Origin: Syncephalis fuscata S228
Taxonomy: Eukaryota; Fungi; Zoopagomycota
NCBI GenBank assembly: GCA_025786725.1
Contig: JAHLTZ010000002.1
Coordinates: 186,001 to 250,000, forward strand
DNA: 64,000 nucleotides
Reading direction: 5' to 3'
In this document: positions 12,676 through 58,704 of the stretch, piece by piece
How the letters are laid out: every line of letters starts with the position of its first letter
Position numbering within the stretch: the first letter of the stretch is position 1
The notes under the pieces: generated by a model
Seen by the model: the letters and a program-made list of their open reading frames with translations, nothing else
The model's database searches: none
What the model was told of the DNA's origin: nothing
Translations under genes and position numbers: made by a program

Positions 12676-14851
12676 TTACAAAGTTTTAAAAACAATGGGC
12701 TCAATTATTGGTAAATATATCATGCCATTGTAAGGAGTGTTGACTGGACGTTTACCAGACATTGTACTAAAATCATAGTGGCGCAATGCATAAGCAATAA
12801 CCGACTTCATTATCATGACAGCTAAAAAGCGACCTGGACATGCGTATCTATACAATGTTAGGTGTAAAACCATAGCTACTCGATACTACTTACTGCCCTG
12901 CACCAAATATTGTGAATGCGTCGGTAATTGTCTATAAATTAATAAATTAGTTACATTAATACTATGCACAATTTATACACACTGATGCTTTAGTAATAAC
13001 ACTATTATCGGCATTGATATGATGGTATGGGTTAAATACGGTTGAGTTTGGTCCATATAAATCTTCAGCAATATTTATCTCTCGTCCATCAGCAACGCAA
13101 AAGCTTCCTATATTTACGCGTTAACATCATATTAGTTGCAAGTTTAAACCTACCTTTAGGAATGATGTAACCACTTTTCAACTGAATATCTACCATGGCT
13201 AATCTAACCGTTTCTACAAACATATATGTTATCAATTGTACACAATTGCTGTAATGGCTTACGGGAAGTTGCATTAACACGAAGCGATTCGCGCACACAT
13301 GCATCAAGAAGCTTCATGTCTTTTGTGGCGTCGGTTGTAATATTTTCTCCATGGCGACTAATAATTTCGTCCTGTTCTTGTTTAAGCTTTTTGCTATAAA
13401 TAAATTAGTTGGCTAGTAACACGTAGTTTATGGCTTGATTTACCGAATATCCGGGTAGCTTGCTATGTCAAACATCAAATGCAACGTATTAACAGATGTG
13501 GTGGATACCGATGAAAAAGCAATCTCCAAAGTACGATGTGCCACTATGTTTGCACTGTACAAATTTCCATTTTGGTCCTCAGCGAATGCAATCCATTCTA
13601 ACATGTCATGCTAGAGTAAACATATTATAAGCAGATATAATTGATGACAATTGATTACTTACCAAAGGTATATAATCAGCACCTTGCTTAGTCTTCATAT
13701 TACGCCGACGCTGTATTTCAGGTACAATGACGTGATCAGCAAGTTTGTTATTTTCCTCGTATGAGGTTAGACGGCGAGTAAGCCAGCTATTACAATAGGC
13801 AAATCAATAAACAATGTTAAATACTGACTGCCCGCTTACCGGCTTATTTTAGTAGGAAATGTGATTTTAAGTCTAGATACCAGATCCAAATCCTTGAAAA
13901 TAGTAGATAGCATGCGTAGCACCTCTGGATCATTATGTAATGACTATTGAATGTGAACATGAATTAAATAGTGTATAAATGTGTAAATCCATTAGATTAT
14001 GTACCTCATTTTCAAACAGACACGTAGCAACTGGCAATTACGTTGTTATGACTTGCATAGAAAGTAATTAACGCGACTTACCTGATTTTCCAATTACTTC
14101 ATGAATGAAAGTGTCAGGATTGTTCATGTAATAGGGTTTGCGCACATCTATCAATACATGTTAATTATATCGCGTATATGATTTACGACTACCATTACAT
14201 ACCGCCTACAGTGTCTTTGAATGCCTGCGCAGTTTTTACAACCATACGAGATTGTAGGTTTTGAAGCTGTTTTGCTAGATGCTTGCGCAAAATAGCAATA
14301 TGAAAACGATCGTGTGGTGCTTTATCACCAAAGACATAAACTGTATCCAAAGCCTATAAATTTCTGATTAGCCTTATGTTTAGCCATATGTTTATTATAC
14401 CATTACATAGTTAACGGCTTCTTTAAAACTCAATTGCTCAGATGGTGCACTAGCTACATCGCGTTGTTCACTTCTTCCAATTATTGTCATCCAGCGACCA
14501 AATATTAGAATACTATACACATCTCCATACTGCAAATGTTAAATAAATCAAACATACTAGAATCAATAAACTTACTTTCTTTTTACATTCCATAAAGAAT
14601 CTATTTCGATTGATTATAAAATTTAATCCGTGACCAACTACGGGAATCCAATATTTAACCTTTGGCGGCCCTTTATCATGCTAATTAGTTGTTAGCAAGC
14701 AACTATATATATTGCAACAACTTACTTGTTTTGCGCCAAACAAATCGGACAATATAAAGGCTACAATTGCTATCAACGTAGCCGATAGCAGTACCGTTTG
14801 GCTATTGTAGTCGCGAGTCGACAGTCCCAAATAATCAACAGCTTGTTGCAT
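12676..14851 (-). CDS. Cytochrome P450, copy A
   Basis: N-terminal anchor followed by GPPKVKYWIPVVGHG, I-helix AFSSVSTT, ExxR (RESLR) and the heme motif FGAGRYACPGRFLA; many short introns. Confidence 0.9.
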
Positions 14852-15617
14852 CCTTACTTTTATCAAGACTCAGTATACAGCGTATAAGATAGATTTAGTA
14901 TAGTGCTGACTTGTTGATACGTCGGTATAGCAAATGTCAATAGTAAAACACTAGAGCGTTTTTACCAATTCAAACTCGACACTGCAAGTATGAAAGCTCG
15001 AACAAATAAAATAATCAGTAATTTTGATATTTTGAATGCTACAACATGTGAGTATTTATTTAATGTCTTTATGGAGGTCGTGTACATAATTGTTCATTGT
15101 TGCAACGTTCACATGATCGCTCATACTGGCAGAGTTCCGCAAGTATGAGTGTATAGAGTGTTACATATCTATGAGTGTCACGGATTTTGATTTCTTTGTG
15201 TGTCTCACAAAACATCAAAGTCACACCGTATAATTAACTCTGCCAAGTTTTAGCTAGCTACATTCACCACACTACTACGTTAAAGCGGCTCATGCTGATG
15301 GATAATAAAACTAATTTTCTAAAAATAAAATTGAATTGTGACCTGATAGCTTAGAACAATCAAATGAATAATATGCAGTCTTCCAAAAACAAGTAATTGT
15401 GGCGTTTGTTTGTATCATATAAATGATAGCGGGGTTGATATGTGCGTTGTAGTGCGTTGAATCTACAATCACCTGAATTGTACCAATTACTTATCCACCA
15501 TGTGACAGATAGCAACGCTTCCATAAGTGATTGTCCATTCAACACATCTCATACCAGCATTACTCATCTTTGTCTATCACTTAGCCTTGGCATATTTAAC
15601 CTGTTGGCACTAGTTTA
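14410..15617 (-). repeat. Inverted-repeat arm A (P450 promoter plus first exons)
   Basis: Reverse complement matches 40221-41430. The ORF track shows identical or near-identical spurious ORFs at 14681/40971 and 15360/40292. Confidence 0.95.
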
Positions 15618-16881
15618 TAATTGTTGATACGCATATAATTATTGCTTTGCTAGTTTTTGATCATAATTAAAACGTTTTTATCTATTTTGTCTTGCAGTTT
15701 TAGCTTTCTTTAAAACTATTTTATAATGATTTTATTAGCAAGTAATATAGTAAATTGAATTTTGAAGATAGCCTGACAATACAGTGCGTTATATTGCTAT
15801 AAAATGCAAAATACTTTTAAATTTAAACAAATAATTGAAAGTGCATTTAGCAAGATGTTTGAAAAGATTAATTGTATGAATAACTATGAGCAATTGCTAT
15901 TTTATATACTCGTAGCCTCTTTAATGGTAAAATAACTTGTATTAGCTACTAGCTAATACGTAGTTTATTAAATGAAACAGCCAATAAGTTATTTTAAAGA
16001 TAAGCTTCAACTAATAATATATAAAGTAATAGCGCTGATACAACCGGTAGTTATTGCAGATTAATAGCAAATCAAGAAATGGTAGCTGGCCTTTAATTAT
16101 AATATTTGAGCTAATTAAATGTCAAGCATTTAATTATTAGCATGTTTTCGCATTGTAAAAACACAGTAATAAAAACCAGCTAGTCAAGACTGTTTACATG
16201 ATTTGTAAACCAATTGATGAGCTATGCTACCAATTAATGTGTCACTAACTTTTCTAATAACTACTATTATAAAGAAATGACGTAACATTACAATTTTTAT
16301 TTAATCTTACTGAAGCTACTATTTTGGTGCATGCTATTTAGTAAAGTGACTCATTTCTCTCTACTCACTTTTTCTGTGTGTGCGTGTGTGCATATGTGTG
16401 CGTACCGCTATAAATTCAGCTTTCCTTTTAAAGGGGCTTGAAAAATGAGTATCGCCGCTCTACTTAGCTCAGTTTTTACTTTTTATACTTTCATTACCCA
16501 AGCGCATGCCGTTCAATGCAAACGGAAATATTGCTATTAGTCTAACCAAGGCAGTAACAATAACAGTGACATTCCAACCGTATCAATATTAAGTGGGAAC
16601 TTCGTTGAAGTCACGTGGAAAAGCGTCATATTTCACCTGCTATTCCGTTTCACTTGTTCATTCAATCTTCAATTGCAACCATCTTTTGTTTTCACAAACA
16701 TCTTTTCAAGCCTTTAGTGATATATTGAGTCTTTTGTGTTGTTGTTTTGTGTTTTCAGATTTAGGTGTTTTGCTGTGGTGTTTTATCGTCATTTGCAGAA
16801 TCTACTGTTTGCTTGCTATTAGCTGTTGAAGCGGTTGCTATTCTCACCCGTTACACTCTACTTACTCGATAGTGGTCAACG

Positions 16882-24129: not shown

Positions 24130-25797
24130 CTAGTTATGTTCAGATGGCATGGAAAAACGGCGTGATGTCCAGGAATGATTGTTATCGTCATTATTGACAC
24201 CAGAATTGATACTTTCTGAATTAAAGCCAGAGTTGCGTCCGAAACTTGCCAAACTCCATCGAAAGTTTGACGACGAAGGCGTGGCTGGTGGTGTTATAAA
24301 TGATATTTGCGGTGAATTACTCATTGGTTTTCTTGCCTGGTAAAAGTAGAGCACCGCATAGCACTGATTAATTTCCATCTCCGCCAAGGCATCATTGATA
24401 ATACGGTCTATTTCATGACTGCGGAGTTTGCAATGGCGAACAAGTACGGGACGAGCTGACTCAGCCATATGGCGCGTAGCATCTGCAAGAGTACGCCCAA
24501 CCAGGCCTCCCCAAGCACCAATGGGCACTGCCGTTTGCTTAACTTCAACGTCAACAAAGCCAGCCTGGCGTAGTCGTGGTTCCATTTGTTCGATAGCATT
24601 TGGATCGACTCCGGCCGTGCTTAAACCGCTGCGAAGTAGACGCTGTAATTCAGCAACATTATGGCCAACTGGCTCCCAATGAATTCCCATTTCGACCAAA
24701 TTCAACTGTCCACCGGGACTGCAAACACGGTGTAGCTCTTGCATAACACGGGATAATCGTTTGGCAGGCAGATAAAAGCCTAACTGACGCTGGTGAACCA
24801 TATCGAATTGGTTATCGTCGAATGGTAAGCCTAGAAATGGACATGTGCGTTAATACCGATAGCCAGTCTTGATATCGATGCACACAATGCCGTCTCTTAC
24901 CATAAAGTACATTGCCTTCGACCCATCTACAATTTTTTGGTAATGCATCGCCACCTGTTAGATCAACGATGTCGCAGCCAATTACTTCGCTGTCCGGGAA
25001 TTCCATAGACATTTCCTACATCATTCAAATGTAAGTATATAGAAATCAACCAATGGTAATCATTTAACACCTACCTGAATCCATATACCGCTTCCAGAAC
25101 CAATGTCTAGAATTCGATGGAGCTGACAAGGCAAATCACCATGGTAGTTGCGATCTAGCACATGTTTTACAATATAGTGAAAGCGATCCATGCTATTATT
25201 AAAATCAATCAATGTAAACACATAAGCAAATTATTAGATGATGCTACTGATGGTCATGATTTACTAGCACTTTACATACCTATCGGTTTCTAGTAAATCA
25301 CTAGGTAATAAGGCACAGGAGCTACCGATCCGAACGTGAGTGCGGCCCTCCAATAGTCTTGTACTAGGACCCTGGTTTGCGTCGCGCTGCCATGTGCGCC
25401 ATGAAATACGACGAGAACTACGACGAGACACGTGCACTTCGGTATTCTCGCCTTGTCTTAGGCTATCTGTACTGCTCATGCTGCGCAGATCTGTACCGGC
25501 CACGCTGTTGTTCATGTCGGATGATTGTGAGGAAAAGCTTTTTTGCAGTCGAACAGACTGTTGAAAGCTAGAGTAGCTGGCCCTCGGTGCAGATGGCAAT
25601 GGAGCATTAGTGCTATTCAGCCTCATAAACGCCAATGGAGCATTCAGAATGCGTCTTTGCTTAGTGGCAGCACGAATATCAGGTGCGCTAAATGATCGAC
25701 GGCTTTTACCGTCTTTATTTTTAAAAACTATTTCAGAAGAGCGGCGATCAAGTATAGTTTGCTGGCTGCCATCTAATTTCGTTGATTGATTTCCCAT
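24130..25797 (-). CDS. SAM-dependent methyltransferase, paralogue 2
   Basis: MGNQST start, ILDIGSGSGIWI, GCDIVD, FDMVHQR, ELHRVCSPGG, VPIGAWGG; same intron positions as paralogue 1. Confidence 0.85.
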
Positions 25798-26874
25798 TGA
25801 TGTACCCAACCACTCGATAATCGTTATTCTATGGTTTATATGCACAATAACGTATATATTACACGATTATGCGATATTGAATAGATAACTAGCGTAGTGG
25901 TAGTGACTGTTTTACATAAATAAAGTGAATGAGTATACGTATATAGATGTGAAGCATAAACACAGATAAAAAAACAGTCCTTTAGAAAAAAGCCGTTTAA
26001 ATAGCTTTAAAAATTAGGCAAAAGGGGAAATCCAGATTTAATGTAGGAATGGCTAAAGATAAGAACGAAGAGAAAAAGATGTAGAAAGATTGTCGGCGGA
26101 AAAGATATGGCTACGATAGACGTAGTCGATGGCAAATTTATGTGTTTGGTTTTTAATTATGCTTTGCTAGTGGACCACATTACTCGTCAAGTTTTTGGCC
26201 ATGGCTGAAAACAAACTTGAAAAGACTTGTAGCACGAGGTCTTGTTAGTTTTGGTCAGCAAGCATGCTACAGGGTGGGAAAACAACGCACGAACTGGACA
26301 TCATGTGTACACATCCTTGGCGATAAACTTGCCAGCCACTAATGCCTTGTGCCATTGCCGTTGTCGTGACCATCGTCATTATTGGTAGAAAGGTTACCAA
26401 ATTGGCATTGCTTCTCTATTACATTCCAAGTATCTCTTGCACTCTTATTGGTCTAGATAATACATGAATCCCAAGCTATAAAAATGATGTTTTGTTAATG
26501 CAGCAATTACTTTCGCTCCGCAACTACTATTGCACGCTTGCATGCACTTTGGATTCGGACCGAAATACTGTACTTTCAAATTCTTCTTCAATTACAAGTG
26601 GTCAAAGTGCATTTTGGCACTTTCCAATACCTTAGAACAACTGTGCTACGCAATATACCACTAACAGCTAATAAAGTGCTGATGTAGGACAAACTATTTC
26701 TACATTTCGTCTACGCACTTGATCACCATTTTCAAGTTAGTTTTACTAATTTTTTTTAGCAATGTATTATACTATATGTTAAATAGCAAAGACAGATTTA
26801 TTGCATACTATACGAGAATCATGCTTAATTGACTTCACACTCCTTGTAAACGCGAATAGAATTAGAGTATAATT

Positions 26875-27832: not shown

Positions 27833-28731
27833 ATAAAATCCATTCTTGCTGTTACTACCACTGCACTTATGCTAGTATCGGCTACTCAAGCCGCATCTGG
27901 TGGTAACATATCAAATTTACCTGAATTTAATCCTAAGCCTAAGCCAGGTCCTATTAGTAGGCGTCTCTTCCAAGTTATTCGTACTATTTGTTAACTCTAT
28001 TATTCATATAAAATTTATGGGATTTAAAGGCAACAATCCAAAGAGCCCATTTACCATACATGGTATCCATTTTACGAAAAACCCATACAAAGTTAAAGGT
28101 GTTACTATATCAAAGGAACGCAGCATAGCCAGCCTATTACACTTGCATGTGGAATAGATTCAAATACAAAAGATGGTGCTTTTAAAGTATACAAGGCAAG
28201 TTTTATATAACAATAGATATGCATTAATTAACAAGCATTACCATCAATAGAATTTAATTGTACATTCTCCATTATTTAACAGTGACAAGTTTTGGTTCCT
28301 GTACCTAAAAAAAACTTTATATTCCCCGGAAATAGGCGTTATATCATACCAGGCCAATGTGAACAGACATATAAACAATTTGCCGATAATCCTCTCAGGT
28401 ATGGCAACTTTAATAGTATTGCTTTCATATAATATTTATAATGCTAATTTTTTGCCTTTGATAAAGCCGTTTAACAAAATGGGTATTTAAGAATGGACAA
28501 GAAGAAATGATGCGTCTTCATATAAATGATACTACTTTAGATAAAAATTTTCAGCTTGTTCCTGATAAAGTAAAACTGAAATACTCTGCAAAACTAAAGA
28601 CGATGGATATACAGAAAAGATGAAAACTTTATACAGTTTGGTTTGAGCTTATGATAACATTTATAATCTAAAGCCAGATGAATGTTTGGAGAAGGCAGAC
28701 AAGTTCATAATAGACTTGTTGGAAAGAATGA
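27833..28731 (+). pseudogene. Decayed secreted-protein gene, copy 1 (start codon reads ATA)
   Basis: Homologous to 57559-58704. Signal-peptide-like (I)KSILAVTTTALMLVSATQA, FMGFKGNNPKSPFTIHGIHFTK; frameshifts, stops and a degraded splice acceptor. Confidence 0.75.
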
Positions 28732-29198
28732 TATTAATTGTACTCCGGGTTGGCTTTATCAGCAATAGTTTATTAAATAATTCATGACATGTTAGGACTC
28801 AATTACTATAACTGTGTACTATACTTTATCCACCATTTATTTGTTTATAGTTGTATTATAGATATAATTGTAAGTTAGATTGCCATGGTTTTATTAAATA
28901 CAAATTAAAACAGCTATAAATTGTATTGAATTTAAGGATAAAAAAGTTATTTATTCATAAAATTAGTATTGCTCTTGAAGCTAATAATACTTTTGCGTTT
29001 CTTTCCAAAGGTTGGTTTTTTCTTTTAATAAAATTTGTATCAAATCTTTATCGACTTTAATGGCAATACATATGGTATAATTACTATTGCATTTGCAAGA
29101 GTGTAATATGAGGTCCGTGAAACCTGTCCCATAAGCGATGATCGAAATAGGAAATTCTACCAATCTGTCATACTGGCACCGTCTTTACGTGCGCCATT

Positions 29199-29400
29199 AA
29201 AAAGGGGCTGTAGCGGAGGAGGTAGGATTCGTCTTACCTTGGTGCTGTCAGCAATGGCAGCATCTTCTCCATAATGCTATGGTAGCGCCGCTGTGGCAAT
29301 GCCATCGAAACGTCATCAAGAGTTTTGGCAGCTATAATTTTTCGGTCCAACGACCTAAAGGGTGGTCCCTTGGCTTCGCTCAAGCTGGGACTGCCTTCTT
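29199..29400 (+). ncRNA. U11: U11 snRNA (minor spliceosome), expanded form
   Basis: 5' AAAAAGGGGCTG, SL3 CGAAACGTCATCAAGAGTTTTG, closing CAGC, Sm site AATTTTT and a 3' hairpin, in the same order as vertebrate U11 as recalled (AAAAAGGGCUUC...GACAUCAAGAGAUUUCGGAAGCAUAAUUUUU). Confidence 0.9.
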
Positions 29401-30036
29401 ATTAATATAAACAAAAATGTGTTTTTAAATAGTTAGATTGTTGATAGTAATAATAATAATAAATCAGTGGGCTTTTTGTTTGACTTATTTATTAACTGTA
29501 TACAATGTTTCTATTCTAATTATCTCAAAGCTGGAGCTGCTTAATTGGCTGCATTAACAAAATAAACGGTATCTTTTTACCGATATACATTTATATAATT
29601 GTAATATATTATCACTATTTACCAAACAGTTATATTTAAACTCTGCAAATAGCATTCTTATTTCTTTGTAGCCATGCTTAATCAATCTAATTTAGTATAA
29701 TTAGATTGCCCAATCATTACTTTGGTTATTTTGACAGTATTGCACTTTCATTGATAAACTATAGACTACGGATGGTCGACATCGTATATTTCAAAAAATA
29801 TTTCTCAGTCTCAATACTACTACAACGTACAAGCGGCGCATCATTTGTACGATAAACATCGAAAAAAGTAATGGTAAAACGGGGAATTAGGCGACATGAG
29901 GCTGTGCATTAAACAAATCCATAGGCATTTGTATCATAAACTGGTTATAGCTGCCCCTAATAGTCATGGTGCAAAGTGGCAGCAACAGTAGCAACAACAA
30001 TATGCCATGCCCACATTTATACGCACTGGACATAAA

Positions 30037-31160: not shown

Positions 31161-33757
31161 TTATGCGAATGGTGGTATTGATGGTGCTGGTGCCGGTGGT
31201 GGCGGCAATGGTATAGGCCCAGTTGATGGTGTATCCTGCAAGCTTGAGAATTTTAGGTAGAAATTAATAAGAACAGCAGCTAAGATGACTCCGACAAGTA
31301 CGCTAGGGCCTGCACGGTCGTCGTATGGGCCTGGTTCACGAGCCCGAATACGGTTCGAACGCCAAATGTACAAGTAAAGCGCGTAAATGAGAATACCCAT
31401 CGAAATGACCGTAAAGATAACACCGGCAGTTCGGCCCACTTTGTCGCCAAAGTTTAATAGACCCAGTGCTAAACCGCCAAGGACAACGGCAAAGTGGACC
31501 CAGGAAAGGAACGTACGCTCGTTGGCAAAGAATACTTTAGGCTCAACACGTACCGGTACAGCAACGCGTTTATCTGTCGTCGCTTTAGGGGCAATTGAGA
31601 TGTGGCGGGCCGTTGAACGACGGCGGCTACTTGATGCAGTGCTACTGCCACCACCAAATACACGGCCTAATGCGGCAGAGAATCGACTGCCTATACCGCC
31701 ACGATAACGACGACGACGATGCGACGACGAGGTAGACGAGGCAATGCTACGCGTTGGCGAACGTGACCGTCCTTGATGTAATGCAGCAGCAGTACTGCTA
31801 CTACTATGACCCAATAAAGGTGCATGTTCACTATTTCCATCATCACGTCGATTATGTCTCTTGCTTCGGCTATTAGATGGTCTCTTTTCGCTACGACGCG
31901 ATTTCGACGATAGATAGTCGTGTCTTTGACGAGGCGATGTGCTTAATGCAGCAATAGCACATGCATCATCAGCTTCATGTCGTCCATCGTCGACCACTAC
32001 TTCAATCGTGTCGTCATCAATGCCGTGGCCGGAACGACGGTGGTCACGATCAGAGTAGCCAGGCGAAACATCGCGTGAATTAGCACGGGACACTTCATGT
32101 GAACGTGAAGCCATTGAGTGCGGACGTGATGAAGTAAGCAGCGAGTTACGTGGCATTGATTTGGGCCGCTTTCTAATATCTTTGTCCATTTGTGGCAGCC
32201 AGAATGGCAGTAATTGAACGTGTGGTTCAAGTAGAGTGGCACAGCCATGAATAAACTTGGAAAACTTGGGCACTTCTTCAACCAAATGGCTTTGAACAAG
32301 ATTGGTTACCCAGTTGGGTGGCTCAGTGCCCACTTCAGTCTGTAGTTTAACTTCAAGAATGGCATATGGGAAGCGGCATATCTCTGAATCAGGTAGATGA
32401 GAGAATGGATAGTTAGTGCCAACATCGGTACGTCGCCAGTTATCGCCAGCACGTGTCTTGCCATCCATGTTGTCTTCACGAATTAGACTAAGTTCAGTGT
32501 CGAGTGAAATACGCACGGTAGCGTCACCAGGAAGCTGGAAGGCTGTACGGTTGTAGAAAGTACGCATTGTTGGCTTTAAGTTCTTGTTGTGCAACGATCC
32601 TTGAATCTCTGCAGCCAGTACTTCTAAGGCGTCAATCTCTACTGGCTTACGAGTACCAGCGGCCCGCATCTTAGCAATGGTTTTATCAAGCGTATATTCG
32701 CCACGTAGGAAAGCGTTGACATGCTTTTCCTTAAGTGGAAATCGTTGTTTAACACTTGTTTCACCGGTCCAGTCTTCTCGGTGTGTTTTACGTTCAATAA
32801 ATATTTCATTATTGGTTACTGGTCCATACCAACGGAAACGAACGGCTTCGGCACCTTCCGTCTTTTCTAAACGACCTTGATACAAGTCAAGCTCCTCATT
32901 ATCAAAATAAATCGAGGAAATGGCTGGATCTGGTGCAGAGGACGGACCGCCTGCTTCATCGGCCATGGAGCCAGTGTTTTTCGATGCTTGGAAAAGCAGT
33001 ACAGGTAGATACTTGAGTACGTAAAACTTGAGTTCCAATACATTGTCTGGATGGACCCAGTATTTAGTAGTGCGGCGGACAAAGTCCTGGGCGCCAGATC
33101 CACCGGCAGCCGCTGAACGACCAACTGGGTCACGTCCACCGTTACGTACAACGTCGTAAAGACGTGATAATTGCAGAATAAGGTCGTCAAAGTTCTCTCG
33201 ATAGAAGGGACGGGCATTGAGGCGGACCATGAACATTGGCTTCAACACATAGCCGGTGTGCTTGTCGTGCTTCTTGATAATCTTAAGAAAGCCGCTGTAA
33301 TTCAAACGAGTGAATCGAGCCAATTCATTAACTTCTTCCAGCACTTGATTGACTTCTTCTTCAATCTGCTGATAGGACGCTGCCTTTTCTTCCTCGCTTA
33401 ACTCGCCAGTCTCTTCTTCGCCTTCCACTGGCTCTTGTGCCGTCTCTTGACGTAGTCGCTTAACACGCTCTTCAAGCGATTGTACTCGTCGATGGATTTC
33501 ACCGAGCTTAACAACTTGAAAGCCGTACACCTAAAGGACACATGATAATTAGCAGTCAATTCGTTATACGTAAAATAAACACTACTTACTTTTTCCAATT
33601 CACGCTCCAATAGCTCTACGTAATAGGCTTCATCGCTTTCTTGATAGCTACCACCCTGGGTACGATCTTTAAGCTGTCGCTTTAAGCCATCATAATCAAG
33701 GTAATAAAAGCGCCATTCTGGAAACAATCCTTCCTTTAGTTGAGAGCCAAATTTCAT
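31161..33757 (-). CDS. VTC4: Vacuolar polyphosphate polymerase (SPX + VTC + DUF202)
   Basis: MKFG SPX start, [57 protein letters not shown]; one coding intron and a probable 5'UTR intron at ~33773-33979. Confidence 0.9.
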
Positions 33758-34414: not shown

Positions 34415-35183
34415 TATGAGTATCCTTATTAGTATAATAATACGTGTTAATAATAGAAACAATTACTAAAGTATGATTAATATTATAGTAATTGTAGATT
34501 TGTTACGATCGAATGACAAGATCAAAGTGGATAGAGTCAATAAATGGCACCAATAGATGGATATTAAGAAGAGTAGACGAAGTATCGTTAATGTGATCAA
34601 TAAAGAAAAGACACAATGATAAGAACGCTGCTGTTAAATAGAAGCCAATGCACGGGAATAGCGGTAAAATATATAATATTGGTACAGCTATTTAGTATAA
34701 TCAACTTGCTACTATTATTTACTACCTGGCCGTGGGTACACAATATCTGTGAAACACCGGTTTGACTTGTCCAATAATTCATGCACCGTATGCACAGCAA
34801 TTTGCAAAGAAAAGGGCTATTTTCTCGGTTACTTTGCTTGGGAATTTTCTATTAAAACAAATGTGAAATGGGCTTGAAAAAAGATGAAAGATAAAAAAGG
34901 CCTTTAAGCTCCGCCTATAATACACGCCTATACCACATGTAGAAACTGAGAGGGAAATACGCAGATCAATCAACTTGTATGTTGTTTTGAGAGTGTATTA
35001 CAATAAATCTTTAATGATATGTACACGTGTGTTTCATACTAATATATTTATTGCCTTGAGACTGGTACATTTAAATGATCATAGAGCAGTTTTACAAATG
35101 ACATCAATTACTGTCATTTCATCATTAAGCACAAAAGCATAATGTTTCAGTTCAAGCAAGTTTTAATCAAATCAGAATGTGAA

Positions 35184-39914: not shown

Positions 39915-40470
39915 AAATATGCAGATATTGGTCCAAAAGCAGTTACTTTATAGCGTGTATTTCTAGAATGTAAATGACAAAATGTAGTAATCTACGCTTT
40001 ACAATGCGACAAACTTATAACTATCTGAATTGTACCAATTAGTTATCCACCATGCAAAAAATCATAACGCGTGTAAGAATAACACTTTATTTAGCATATT
40101 TCGCATTAAAATGGCCTATCTTTGTCTACTGCTTAGTCTTGCTTTATTCAGCCTGCTAGCATCAGCCTAAAATTAATCATATGTACGCACAGTCATTCTA
40201 TTATTAGTTTCAACTGTTTTAAACTAATGCCAACAGGTTAAATATGCCAAGGCTAAGTGATAGACAAAGGTGAGTAATGCTGGTATGAGATGTGTTGAAT
40301 GGACAATCACTTATGGAAGCGTTGCTATCTGTCACATGGTGGATAAGTAATTGGTACAATTCAGGTGATTGTAGATTCAACGCACTACAACGCACATATC
40401 AACCCCGCTATCATTTATATGATACAAACAAACGCCACAGTTACTTGTTTTTGGAAGACTGCATATTATT
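39915..40470. repeat. Imperfect foldback (inverted) repeat centred near 40195
   Basis: CTGAATTGTACCAATTAGTTATCCACCATG (~40025) pairs with CATGGTGGATAAGTAATTGGTACAATTCAG (~40334). TTTGTCTACTGCTTAGTCTTG (~40121) pairs with CAAGGCTAAGTGATAGACAAA (~40248). Outer arm limits are approximate. Confidence 0.7.
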
Positions 40471-41430
40471 CATTTGATTGTTCTAAGCTATCAGGTCACA
40501 ATTCAATTTTATTTTTAGAAAATTAGTTTTATTATCCATCAGCATGAGCCGCTTTAACGTAGTAGTGTGGTGAATGTAGCTAGCTAAAGCTTGGCAGAGT
40601 TAATTATACGGTGTGACTTTGATGTTTTGTGAGACACACAAAGAAATCAAAATCCGTGACACTCATAGATATGTAACACTCTATACACTCATACTTGCGG
40701 AACTCTGCCAGTATGAGCGATCATGTGAACGTTGCAACAATGAACAATTATGTACACGACCTCCATAAAGACATTAAATAAATACTCACATGTTGTAGCA
40801 TTCAAAATATCAAAATTACTGATTATTTTATTTGTTCGAGCTTTCATACTTGCAGTGTCGAGTTTGAATTGGTAAAAACGCTCTAGTGTTTTACTATTGA
40901 CATTTGCTATACCGACGTATCAACAAGTCAGCACTATACTAAATCTATCTTATACGCTGTATACTAAGTCTTGATAAAAGTAAGGATGCAACAAGCTGTT
41001 GATTATTTGGGACTGTCGACTCGCGACTACAATAGCCAAACGGTACTGCTATCGGCTACGTTGATAGCAATTGTAGCCTTTATATTGTCCGATTTGTTTG
41101 GCGCAAAACAAGTAAGTTGTTGCAATATATATAGTTGCTTGCTAACAACTAATTAGCATGGTAAAGGGCCGCCAAAGGTTAAATATTGGATTCCCGTAGT
41201 TGGTCACGGATTAATTTTATAATCAATCGAAATAATTCTTTATGGAATGTAAAAAGAAAGTACGTTTATTGATTCTAGTATGCTTAATTTACTTAACATT
41301 TACAGTATGGAGATGTGTATAGTATTCTAATATTTGGTCGCTGGATAACAATAATTGGAAGAAGTGAACAGCATGATGTAATCTGTGCACCATCCGAACA
41401 ATTAAATTTTAAAGAAGCCCTTGACGATGC
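40221..41430 (+). repeat. Inverted-repeat arm B (P450 promoter plus first exons)
   Basis: Nearly identical to the reverse complement of 14410-15617 over the first ~1 kb. Confidence 0.95.
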
Positions 41431-43160
41431 AAGTAAAACAGAGAATAGTATTTAATACATAAAGCTTACATCAAATAGGTCATTGATACTGCCTTTATTT
41501 TTAACGATCCGATTCCACGTGATCGATTCCATATCGGCACTTTGCGTAAGAATTTGGCAAAACAACTTGGAAAACTGCATTCCCGTATGATGATAAGAAT
41601 TGTGCAATCTTTTCAAATACCATAAGCAGTATGTACATATGAAATTGCTATATATTTGGTGCACTAATAGCAATGTGAATTGATAGGCGCATCTACAGAT
41701 TACTATATGAAAGATTCTTATAATTTTGTTCATCAAATGGTTGGAAAAGCAAGTAAGCCACACTAATATAATACTAATAGACTATGCTAATTTTATATTT
41801 AGTGGCGGCGTTTATATTTGAAAACGAAGTAAGATTATCGGTAATTTAATGACATTTCCTTTATTTATATTATTGCTATGTAGGAACTCCAAACCAATTC
41901 AGAAGTGATACGCATGTTGTGCACAATCGCTAATGATACAGATATAGCTGCAAGTTTAAAAATGATATTCCCGCTCAAAGTATATCGGTAAGTGTAAATA
42001 TGTAATAAATCAAGTAAATATTTATTTGTCATGCTAGTTGGATTTTCCGACATATAACTGCTTACAAAAAAAATCATAAGCTTTCCAGTGAGATTTTTGT
42101 ACCTGAGATTCAACGTCGCCGTGATATGAAAACCAAATTGGGCGATGATTATGTCTCGTCAGTAAGCACAGAATATATAGCATAAATGAACGTGTTTATT
42201 GACCCGTGTTTTAGTATGACATGCTGGAATGGATCACATTTACTGAAGATCCAAACGGACGTTTATACAATGTCAATATTGTAGCCAATCGTGTTTTAGA
42301 GGCCGCTTTTGTGGCCGTCTCGACGACATCAAACAACACACTGCATTTATTGTTTGATATGGCTAGCTATCCTGACTATCGGTAAGTCAAATTACAATAT
42401 CAAATACGCAAATTAGCTTATTTGTTTAAAGTAAAAAACTCCAAGATGAACAGAATGAGATTATTCATCGTTATGGAAATGATATTACAGATGAATCTTT
42501 AAGGGGAATGACATTCCTTGATGCATTTGTACGTGAATCACTTCGTGTCAATGGAAATGCTCGTAAGTAATTGTATAAAGCACATTTATATAATTACTAA
42601 TTGTTTACGATATACAACAGAGGCGGTCAGAATAGCTTTAGATGATGTTCAATTGAAAAGCGGATATGTAATTCCAAAAGGTAGATTTAGACATATAAAC
42701 AAATATCACACTAACACGTAAATAGGAACGCTGTGTGTCGCTGATGGACGAGAGATTAATATTGCAGAAGATCTATATGGGCCAGATCCTGTGCAATTTA
42801 ATCCATATCATCACATTAACACCAACACGGGCTTGCTACTAAAGCATCGGTATGTATGAACAATGCATAATATTAATGCAACTAATTGTTGATTTATAGA
42901 CGGTCACCAAATCATTCACGATATTTGGCGCTGGGCAGTAAGTAATAGCAGTAGCTATGGTTTTACACCTAACATTGTATAGATATGCATGTCCAGGTCG
43001 CTTTTTGGCTGTCATGACAATGAAATCGGTTGCTGCTTATGCATTGCGCCACTATGATTTTAGTACAATGTCTGGTAAACGACCAGCTAATTTTTTGCAG
43101 AATAATGTCGTATATCTGCCAGTCACTGAACCAATTATTTTTAAAACGCGTTTTGAATAA
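40986..43160 (+). CDS. Cytochrome P450, copy B (several single-base indels; possible pseudogene)
   Basis: Same exon structure as copy A, with RESLR and FGAGRYACPGRFLA. Indels at ~41212, ~41234, ~41617 and ~41717 break the frame relative to copy A. Confidence 0.8.
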
Positions 43161-57558: not shown

Positions 57559-58704
57559 ATGAAATCAATTATTGCTGCCACTGTTACTGCACTCATGCTA
57601 GTATCAATTGCCCAAGTTGCTCCTGTTAATGGCATGCCAGGTTTATCCAAATCTACATCTAAATCCAAGCCTGAACCTGAGCCCATCAGTAAATGTCTAC
57701 TACATATTATCTATGCTATTTGCTAAACTTACTTTTATGTAGAATTTATGGGTTTTGAAAACAACGATCCAAAGAGCCCATTTACCATACATGGTATCCA
57801 TTTTACGAAACCCCCATACAAAGTTGATGGTGTTCACTATATCAAAGGGACGCAGCATAGCCAGCCTATTACACTTGCATGTGGAACATATTCAAGTCCA
57901 AGCAATAATGCTTTTCAAGTATACAAGGCACGTTTTATTTGGCAGTAGATAGGCAAGGACTAACAAGCATTGTCATCCATAGGATTTAATGGCACATTCT
58001 CCATTATTTAAAAGTGATAAGTTTTCGGTTCCTGTACCTAAAGCAGCTTTACATTTCCTGGAAATAGATGCTATATCATACCAGGCCAATGCGCATTGAC
58101 ATATGAAGATTTTCTAAAAAACCGCTCAGATATGGCAAATCTAATTAAATTGTTTTTACATAATATCTATCATTACAATTTTTAATTAATACGATTCAAA
58201 ATTGATATGAAATGGTATCAAATTTATGGCGGAATATTGCATCAATATAAGATTTTATTATTTATACGATATATATTAAACTATTATTAGATCTAGATGC
58301 AATAAAAGAAGCGGAATAGTATGCTCATATAATTTTAAAGGTAGGTATGGTTTTTGTCAATAATGTGTGTATTAATGATATTGCTAGGTATTTGCATCAC
58401 CAAGAATAAAAATAATGAATATATACCACAATCTCTCAACTTTAATAATGCTATTTCAAAAAAAAAATTGTTCAAACATAATACAGTATCGTGAAATTAT
58501 AAATGGTATTACTGTAACGCCGATCTTCAGCTTGCCTCTAAACAAGTAAAAATTGAAATACTGTAGAATTAAAGATGATGAATATGCTGAAAGGAGGAAG
58601 GCTTTATACAGTGATTATTGAGTTTATTTAATCTTTATTCTTTAAAGCCAGATGAATGTTTGAAGAAGGCAGACAAGGTCACTATAAATTTGTTGGAAGA
58701 ATGA
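57559..58704 (+). pseudogene. Decayed secreted-protein gene, copy 2
   Basis: MKSIIAATVTALMLVSIAQVAPVNG signal peptide, an intron, EFMGFENNDPKSPF...FIWQ* and then several stops and frameshifts. Homology to copy 1 spans ~56925-58822 versus ~27485-28850. Confidence 0.75.

Follow-up and report, generated by a model that had tools for sequence, protein, structure and literature searches.

A predicted U11 snRNA gene with an expanded stem-loop I in the mycoparasitic fungus Syncephalis fuscata

Syncephalis fuscata belongs to the Piptocephalidaceae (Zoopagomycota, Zoopagomycotina, Zoopagales) and is one of a group of obligate mycoparasites. In a 64-kb stretch of its genome, here called the window, a GC-rich island at 29199-29400 had been read from sequence as a gene for U11, the small RNA by which the 5' splice sites of rare minor-class introns are recognized, and as a sign of a minor spliceosome in this fungus. 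The locus therefore raises the question of whether the island is a working U11 gene and whether the genome holds the parts and a substrate that such a gene would serve. The island itself is as that reading described it, with a G+C fraction of 0.49-0.52 in 29199-29400 and of 0.22-0.27 in the A+T-rich intergenic flanks. The analyses presented below favor the interpretation that 29199-29396 (+) is the single functional U11 snRNA gene of S. fuscata, to which we assign a probability of about 0.93.

The Rfam U11 family (RF00548) matches positions 29199-29380 (+) over the full model (positions 1-134 of 134) with 47.5 bits, and the covariance model, with a curated gathering score of 39 bits, thereby bears out the proposed identity. 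When the whole 64-kb window was compared with 4227 Rfam families, U11 was the one match above the gathering score (E value of 1.8e-5), and the E value is 1e-6 when the local 3.7 kb is scanned. In the 29.4-Mb, 371-contig genome, RF00548 reports the window locus alone, and none of 14 control genomes has a match. The RNA folds better than its shuffled versions (z = -3.6). The gene was extended to 29396 because sequence conservation with the orthologues and a consensus 3' hairpin reach that far, and this conserved hairpin fits the originally proposed end at 29400 better than does the end of the Rfam match at 29380. The mature U11 RNA is predicted to be ~198 nt long, and we infer its exact ends. 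A scan for bacterial promoters and terminators around the gene was uninformative because the organism is a eukaryote.

Genes flanking U11 made it possible to look for it in relatives. The gene order in the window is VTC4 (-), a DUF202/VTC1-like gene (-), and U11 (+), in which the 789-codon open frame at 31161-33530 (-) encodes a VTC4-type polyphosphate polymerase subunit. The translated frame is residue-identical to the NCBI S. fuscata protein except for a 59-residue in-frame stretch; these 59 codons are stop-free, yet they are annotated as an intron in the public S. fuscata annotation. Further VTC4 matches are a metagenome (JGI) protein (80%) and proteins of S. plumigaleata (78%), S. pseudoplumigaleata (74%), and Thamnocephalis sphaerospora (69%). 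Rfam scans of the sequence that surrounds the VTC4 orthologues in these relatives gave U11 matches in S. pseudoplumigaleata (L052:3905-4092, 45.3 bits) and T. sphaerospora (L053:14419-14570, 58.9 bits, E value of 2.2e-8). In both species U11 is found shortly past the DUF202 gene, and its relative orientation matches that in the window. The scan did not find U11 at the VTC4 locus of S. plumigaleata (L051) or Piptocephalis (L054), and the S. plumigaleata result weighs against the favored interpretation. A pattern scan for U11 of relatives in metagenome contigs gave 28 loci, all of which were rejected as chance matches with no U11 similarity outside the pattern; those in gut-metagenome assemblies were set aside.

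Several other features of these loci were observed. In S. pseudoplumigaleata, tandem methyltransferase genes follow U11 (L052:4335-10560). In the S. fuscata window, no Pfam families were found in the open reading frames at 24130-24801 (-) and 25264-25845 (-). The window also contains a 278-nt direct repeat with 80% identity (28104-28381 and 57836-58113, 29.7 kb apart), one copy of which is ~0.8 kb upstream of U11, and a large inverted repeat (14403-15650 and 40187-41432) with ~24.5 kb between its arms, which comprise 1032 nt with 98% complementarity and a second pair of 198 nt with 89% complementarity.

The gene and its parts, all on the + strand, are as follows.

29199-29396, +: U11 snRNA gene (Rfam match, orthologue conservation, and consensus 3' hairpin)
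29199-29207, +: single-stranded 5' end AAAAAGGGG, for 5' splice-site recognition (Rfam model positions 1-8)
29206-29210, +: closing helix of the four-way junction, 5' strand (GGCUG), pairing with 29329-29333
29211-29279, +: stem-loop I, which holds a lineage-specific 55-nt expansion at 29216-29270
29241-29264, +: hairpin with a GCAA (GNRA-type) tetraloop within the stem-loop I expansion (consensus fold)
29280-29304, +: stem-loop II (Rfam alignment; two nonstandard pairs)
29305-29328, +: stem-loop III, with the loop AUCAAGA at 29315-29321
29329-29333, +: closing helix, 3' strand (CAGCU) (Rfam alignment and consensus fold)
29334-29345, +: predicted Sm-protein binding site AUAAUUUUUCGG, aligned to the Rfam consensus AUAAUUUUUgg
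29344-29355, +: small 4-bp hairpin (GGUC/GACC) directly 3' of the Sm site (consensus fold)
29360-29396, +: 3'-terminal stem-loop (consensus fold)

The 5' end, closing helix, stem-loop III loop, Sm site, and 3' hairpin were thus each located, in the order in which the sequence-only reading had placed them. The AAAAAGGGG segment is unpaired in both the minimum-energy fold and the consensus fold, and its AAAGGGG is invariant in 3/3 orthologues. The consensus fold of the three U11 sequences has 44 pairs, distributed over the closing helix, a stem-loop I hairpin, stem-loops II and III, the post-Sm hairpin, and a terminal helix of 15 pairs. The closing helix is complete (5/5 pairs, with 100% of cells paired in the three species). 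Stem-loop II keeps six pairs, one of them compensatory, and the 7-bp stem of stem-loop III includes two compensatory pairs. The AUCAAGA loop of stem-loop III, which is universally conserved in U11, equals the Rfam consensus exactly and is invariant in the three species. The AAUUUUUCGG portion of the Sm site is likewise invariant; a C stands between the U run and the G(G), a slight departure from the textbook Sm site, where the G comes straight after the U run. Covariation is silent on the GGUC/GACC hairpin because its stem does not vary among the three species. The 3'-terminal helix has 95.6% of its cells paired, and both partners have changed in three of its 15 consensus pairs. Over the whole fold, pair cells are standard in 97.6% of cases and nine of the 44 pairs are changed on both sides, values that come from three sequences with a structure predicted from the same three. 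When the partners are shifted by 1 to 3 columns, pairing falls to 27-46%, with 0 to 2 double-changed pairs, and the observed pairing and covariation values are reached by 1 to 2 of 500 shuffles.

The unusual feature of the RNA is stem-loop I, into which the Rfam alignment places 29216-29270 as a 55-nt insertion. Folded alone, this segment forms a stem bearing two hairpins (z = -4.4) and is thus branched in S. fuscata. The insert of S. pseudoplumigaleata is 61 nt long and forms one long hairpin (z = -4.5), and that of Thamnocephalis has 17 nt. The GCAA-capped hairpin is common to both Syncephalis species, and three of its seven consensus pairs are changed on both sides. The orthologue data confirm the structured expansion of 55 to 61 nt and, by this comparison of sequences, mark it as specific to Syncephalis.

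Upstream of the gene, one short element stands out.

29125-29134, +: proximal-sequence-element-like box TGTCCCATAA, spanning -74 to -65 relative to the start of U11

The upstream DNA of the three U11 genes is unalignable except for this box. The identical 10-mer is found at -77 for U11 in S. pseudoplumigaleata and at -71 for the U4 gene of S. fuscata. Related forms are present at -76 for U11 in Thamnocephalis (GATCCCACAA) and, within S. fuscata, at -66 for U6atac (AGTCCCACAA, the box also being written TCCCACAA) and at -55 for U12 (TATCCCATGA, the box also being written TCCCATGA). In the 64-kb window, TCCCAYAA occurs twice on both strands together, and one of the occurrences is the U11 box. 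The other, a TCCCATAA at 28015-28022 (-), has no Rfam match or recognizable small RNA downstream. From its position and conservation, the box at about -72 probably serves the snRNA genes of these fungi as their proximal sequence element. Found ~65-75 nt upstream, TCCCAYAA is a candidate snRNA promoter element with which other small RNA genes might be sought in these genomes. Besides the TCCCAYRA box, the S. fuscata U6atac and U12 genes have TTAAATAGG just upstream, with an AAATAGG core starting at -27 in U6atac and at -25 in U12; U11 has GAAATAGGAAA at about -55, and U4 is without such an element. By analogy with plant snRNA genes, the TTAAATAGG-type element may be TATA-like and may set the choice of polymerase. 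Together, the same-locus orthologues in two species, the compensatory changes, and the conserved promoter box show that U11 is under selection.

A substrate is visible in the same window. The sequence-only reading had placed an AT-AC intron 29 kb from the island, and such an intron was found 28.65 kb from U11.

465-545, -: candidate U12-type AT-AC intron of 81 nt, likely substrate (motifs and frame)

The intron, read as 545-465 (-), starts with ATATCCTTTT and has a branch-like ACTTAAC 21 nt before the terminal AC. Its removal at AT-AC leaves an open frame that runs on across the following exon as far as a GTAAGT donor, as judged by eye from the frames of two exons, and splicing at a nearer AG instead runs into a stop. 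Between the AAAAAGGGG 5' end of U11 and the CCUUUU of ATATCCTTTT, six Watson-Crick pairs are possible, in line with the complementarity that had been claimed for AAAAGG. Elsewhere in the window, GTATCCTTAT at 34420 (+) resembles a GT-type 5' splice site of U12 introns; it lies in A+T-rich DNA, and the 400 nt after it contain no CCTTRA branch box.

The companion parts of a minor spliceosome, which the sequence-only reading had named as a genome-wide check, were recovered in part: U6atac and exons of two U11/U12 protein genes score above their cut-offs, U12 is represented by a subthreshold candidate, and U4atac was not found. The U6atac gene (G000:C315:4451-4610; L003:1501-1660) scores 37.8 bits against a cut-off of 33 and has AAGGAGAGA and a terminal U run. 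An exon with a match to the C terminus of PDCD7/59K scores 29.2 bits (Pfam cut-off, 27), with further in-frame exons upstream, and one with a match to the ubiquitin-like domain of SNRNP25/25K (PF18036) scores 38.1 bits (cut-off, 22.8). The U12 candidate (G000:C157:67826-67997; L002:1501-1672) aligns to the full model with 34.6 bits, below the gathering score of 53, and the shortfall is partly due to insertions. This candidate has an intact branch-site box, AAUGAGUAAGGA, and an Sm site, and it is plausible as the U12 gene. Head to head with it, at L002:993-1211 (-), is a first exon that by eye resembles the N terminus of a clathrin-adaptor medium (mu) subunit.

For U4atac, the genome search with Rfam RF00618, in which 50 of 803 candidates were scored, gave none with an E value of ≤0.001, a result that does not imply absence. 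The sole match with an E value of ≤10 (G000:C309:130080-130157, 21 bits) was rejected as U4atac, its 5' end not being complementary to U6atac. The U6atac segments AGUUGGCG and CCCCCUGGGCAAGGACGGG are the complementarity targets expected of a U4atac, and four patterns were made from U6atac stems I and II (an exact complement allowing 3 mismatches, and combinations of stem II with stem I in which wobble pairs were either permitted or not). In the S. fuscata genome, the four patterns returned only U6atac itself or matches no commoner than those of a reversed-pattern control, and no kink-turn or Sm site was found in the matches. The U4 model finds U4 alone in the genome (100.9 bits). Between the 5' end of this U4 and the stem II region of U6atac, pairing amounts to -16.6 kcal/mol, which 0.8% of shuffles attain; this gives no support for substitution because U6 and U6atac are homologous in that region. 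U4 was rejected as a stand-in for U4atac, as the U6atac stem I region pairs with it no better than shuffles do. A bolder idea, that the Syncephalis minor spliceosome runs on remodeled RNA, with a selected expansion of U11 stem-loop I and a U4atac that is either too divergent for the Rfam model or absent, is in our view unlikely. On that idea, the expansion could offer a protein, or a tertiary contact of the RNA, a new place to dock.

Traces of the RNA were sought in public sequencing libraries. A word-index search returned 22 runs, 18 of which are recorded as RNA, from 14 studies; most of the runs with U11 words are soil, rhizosphere, or plant metatranscriptomes with few words each. Three runs were compared over 28900-29700 (801 nt). 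In these soil or rhizosphere metatranscriptomes, each from a different study, contigs are 90-95% identical to 29263-29373, and coverage is confined to that segment. Upstream, the contigs diverge inside the variable stem-loop I insert, where a consensus of their loose ends upstream of 29263 could, by eye, form a GCAA-capped hairpin with other stem letters. The contigs represent U11 RNA, or possibly DNA, of close relatives and not of this strain, and the ends of the RNA cannot be read from them. Run X1, which has a 100%-identical contig, was rejected as evidence of expression: the contig spans 205 nt of the upstream flank and has adapters at both ends, and it is probably DNA for these reasons. 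Judged from the sequence evidence, U11 is likely to be expressed in S. fuscata.

If the gene works as do those of humans and plants, its RNA would be transcribed from an snRNA-type promoter with the TGTCCCATAA box at about -74 as the proximal element, and an Sm ring would be loaded at AUAAUUUUUCGG. The particle would then assemble with U11/U12-specific proteins such as 59K/PDCD7 and 25K/SNRNP25, the genes for which are present. By the same analogy, AAAAAGGGG would recognize U12-type introns like the one at 545-465 (-) by pairing to their /RUAUCCUUU 5' splice site, and U11 would act in a U11/U12 di-snRNP with the fungus's own U12, to be followed by U6atac.

Of the explanations that compete with a functional U11 gene, the one that survives best is that the locus is a relic, descended from U11 and disused as minor splicing is lost in the lineage; we consider it very improbable. 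It would account for the undetected U4atac and for a U12 under the Rfam threshold, the one contig 100% identical to the gene of this strain is probably DNA, and a relic is in keeping with the pronounced loss of minor introns that Larue and Roy infer for the Zoopagomycota ancestor (PMC10639083). A disused gene is, however, hard to reconcile with functional motifs that are all invariant, stems kept by compensatory changes, and a promoter box conserved across two genera. The genes for U11-specific proteins are also present, an AT-AC intron interrupts an open frame in the same window, and RNA-library contigs of close relatives cover the conserved part of the RNA.

Still less probable, by about half, is that the similarity to U11 is superficial and the locus encodes another RNA of the Sm class, for example a divergent U1 or an unknown snRNA. 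U1 is in the same Rfam clan as U11, and the two have in common a four-way junction, an Sm site, and a 3' hairpin; however, cmscan retains the best family per clan, and U11 is the one retained. The score exceeds the cut-off by just 8.5 bits and stem-loop I is atypical, whereas the Thamnocephalis orthologue, which has a shorter insert, reaches 58.9 bits. The 5' end is AAAAAGGGG and not the U1-type ACUUACCU, and the AUCAAGA loop, which is specific to U11, is matched exactly and does not vary. The least probable of all is a G+C-rich island that has its motifs by chance, for which nothing speaks except the moderate bit score. E values of 1.8e-5 to 1e-6 stand against it, as does conservation of the locus, the structure, and the promoter box among three species, and it is already refuted by the orthologue data.

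Compared with the U11 of animals and plants (Rfam RF00548; human RNU11), the functional U11 of S. fuscata favored here shares the single-stranded 5' AAAAAGGG for pairing with the 5' splice site, the four-way junction, the AUCAAGA loop, the Sm site with a terminal hairpin after it, and the presence of one gene copy preceded by a putative proximal element. It differs in its length of ~198 nt, against 134 for the RF00548 model, in the 55-nt branched insertion in stem-loop I with its GCAA-capped hairpin, in an Sm site that reads UUUUUCGG, and in an extra small hairpin between the Sm site and the terminal stem-loop. U1 (Rfam RF00003, clan CL00005), the functional analogue in the major spliceosome, has the same overall architecture, whereas the S. 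fuscata RNA is of the U11 type in its 5' recognition sequence and in the loop of stem-loop III. The expansion of stem-loop I, covarying and lineage-specific, is hereby documented for U11.

Among fungi, minor snRNAs have been reported in Rhizopus oryzae, Phycomyces blakesleeanus, Mucor circinelloides, and Batrachochytrium dendrobatidis (Lopez et al. 2008, PMC2396436), and all four minor snRNAs together with 205 minor introns are known from Rhizophagus irregularis (Larue and Roy 2023, PMC10639083). In Basidiobolus meristosporus, a member of the Zoopagomycota, 249 minor introns (0.554%) represent the highest density reported in fungi, and a low ancestral minor-intron density with strong loss is inferred for the Zoopagomycota ancestor (PMC10639083). 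Retention of minor splicing by early-diverging fungi has been published since 2006-2008 and was extended in 2023 (PMC2396436 and PMC10639083), and the background statement of the sequence-only reading, that among fungi only some early-diverging lineages have kept a minor spliceosome, agrees with this literature. We found no paper on the minor spliceosome in Syncephalis or the Zoopagales. U11 in the Zoopagales is therefore a known RNA in a previously undescribed lineage, a solid addition and an expected one because other early-diverging fungi are known to have minor-class machinery; the established view that such fungi keep minor splicing is unchanged.

The set predicted for S. fuscata, with U11, a U12 candidate, U6atac, U11/U12 proteins, and a candidate AT-AC intron, resembles that of the early-diverging fungi in which minor spliceosomes have been reported. 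S. fuscata differs from them in lineage, belonging to the Zoopagomycotina and Zoopagales and being one of the obligate mycoparasites. B. meristosporus, which has retained minor splicing, is of the same phylum and of a different subphylum. If many AT-AC introns were confirmed, the Zoopagales would contradict the early depletion of minor introns inferred for the Zoopagomycota. With the present locus, the poorly studied order Zoopagales gains an intact U11 gene, of a kind that protein-centered annotation overlooks, and U11 with its two syntenic orthologues adds data points on the survival of the U12-dependent system in fungi.
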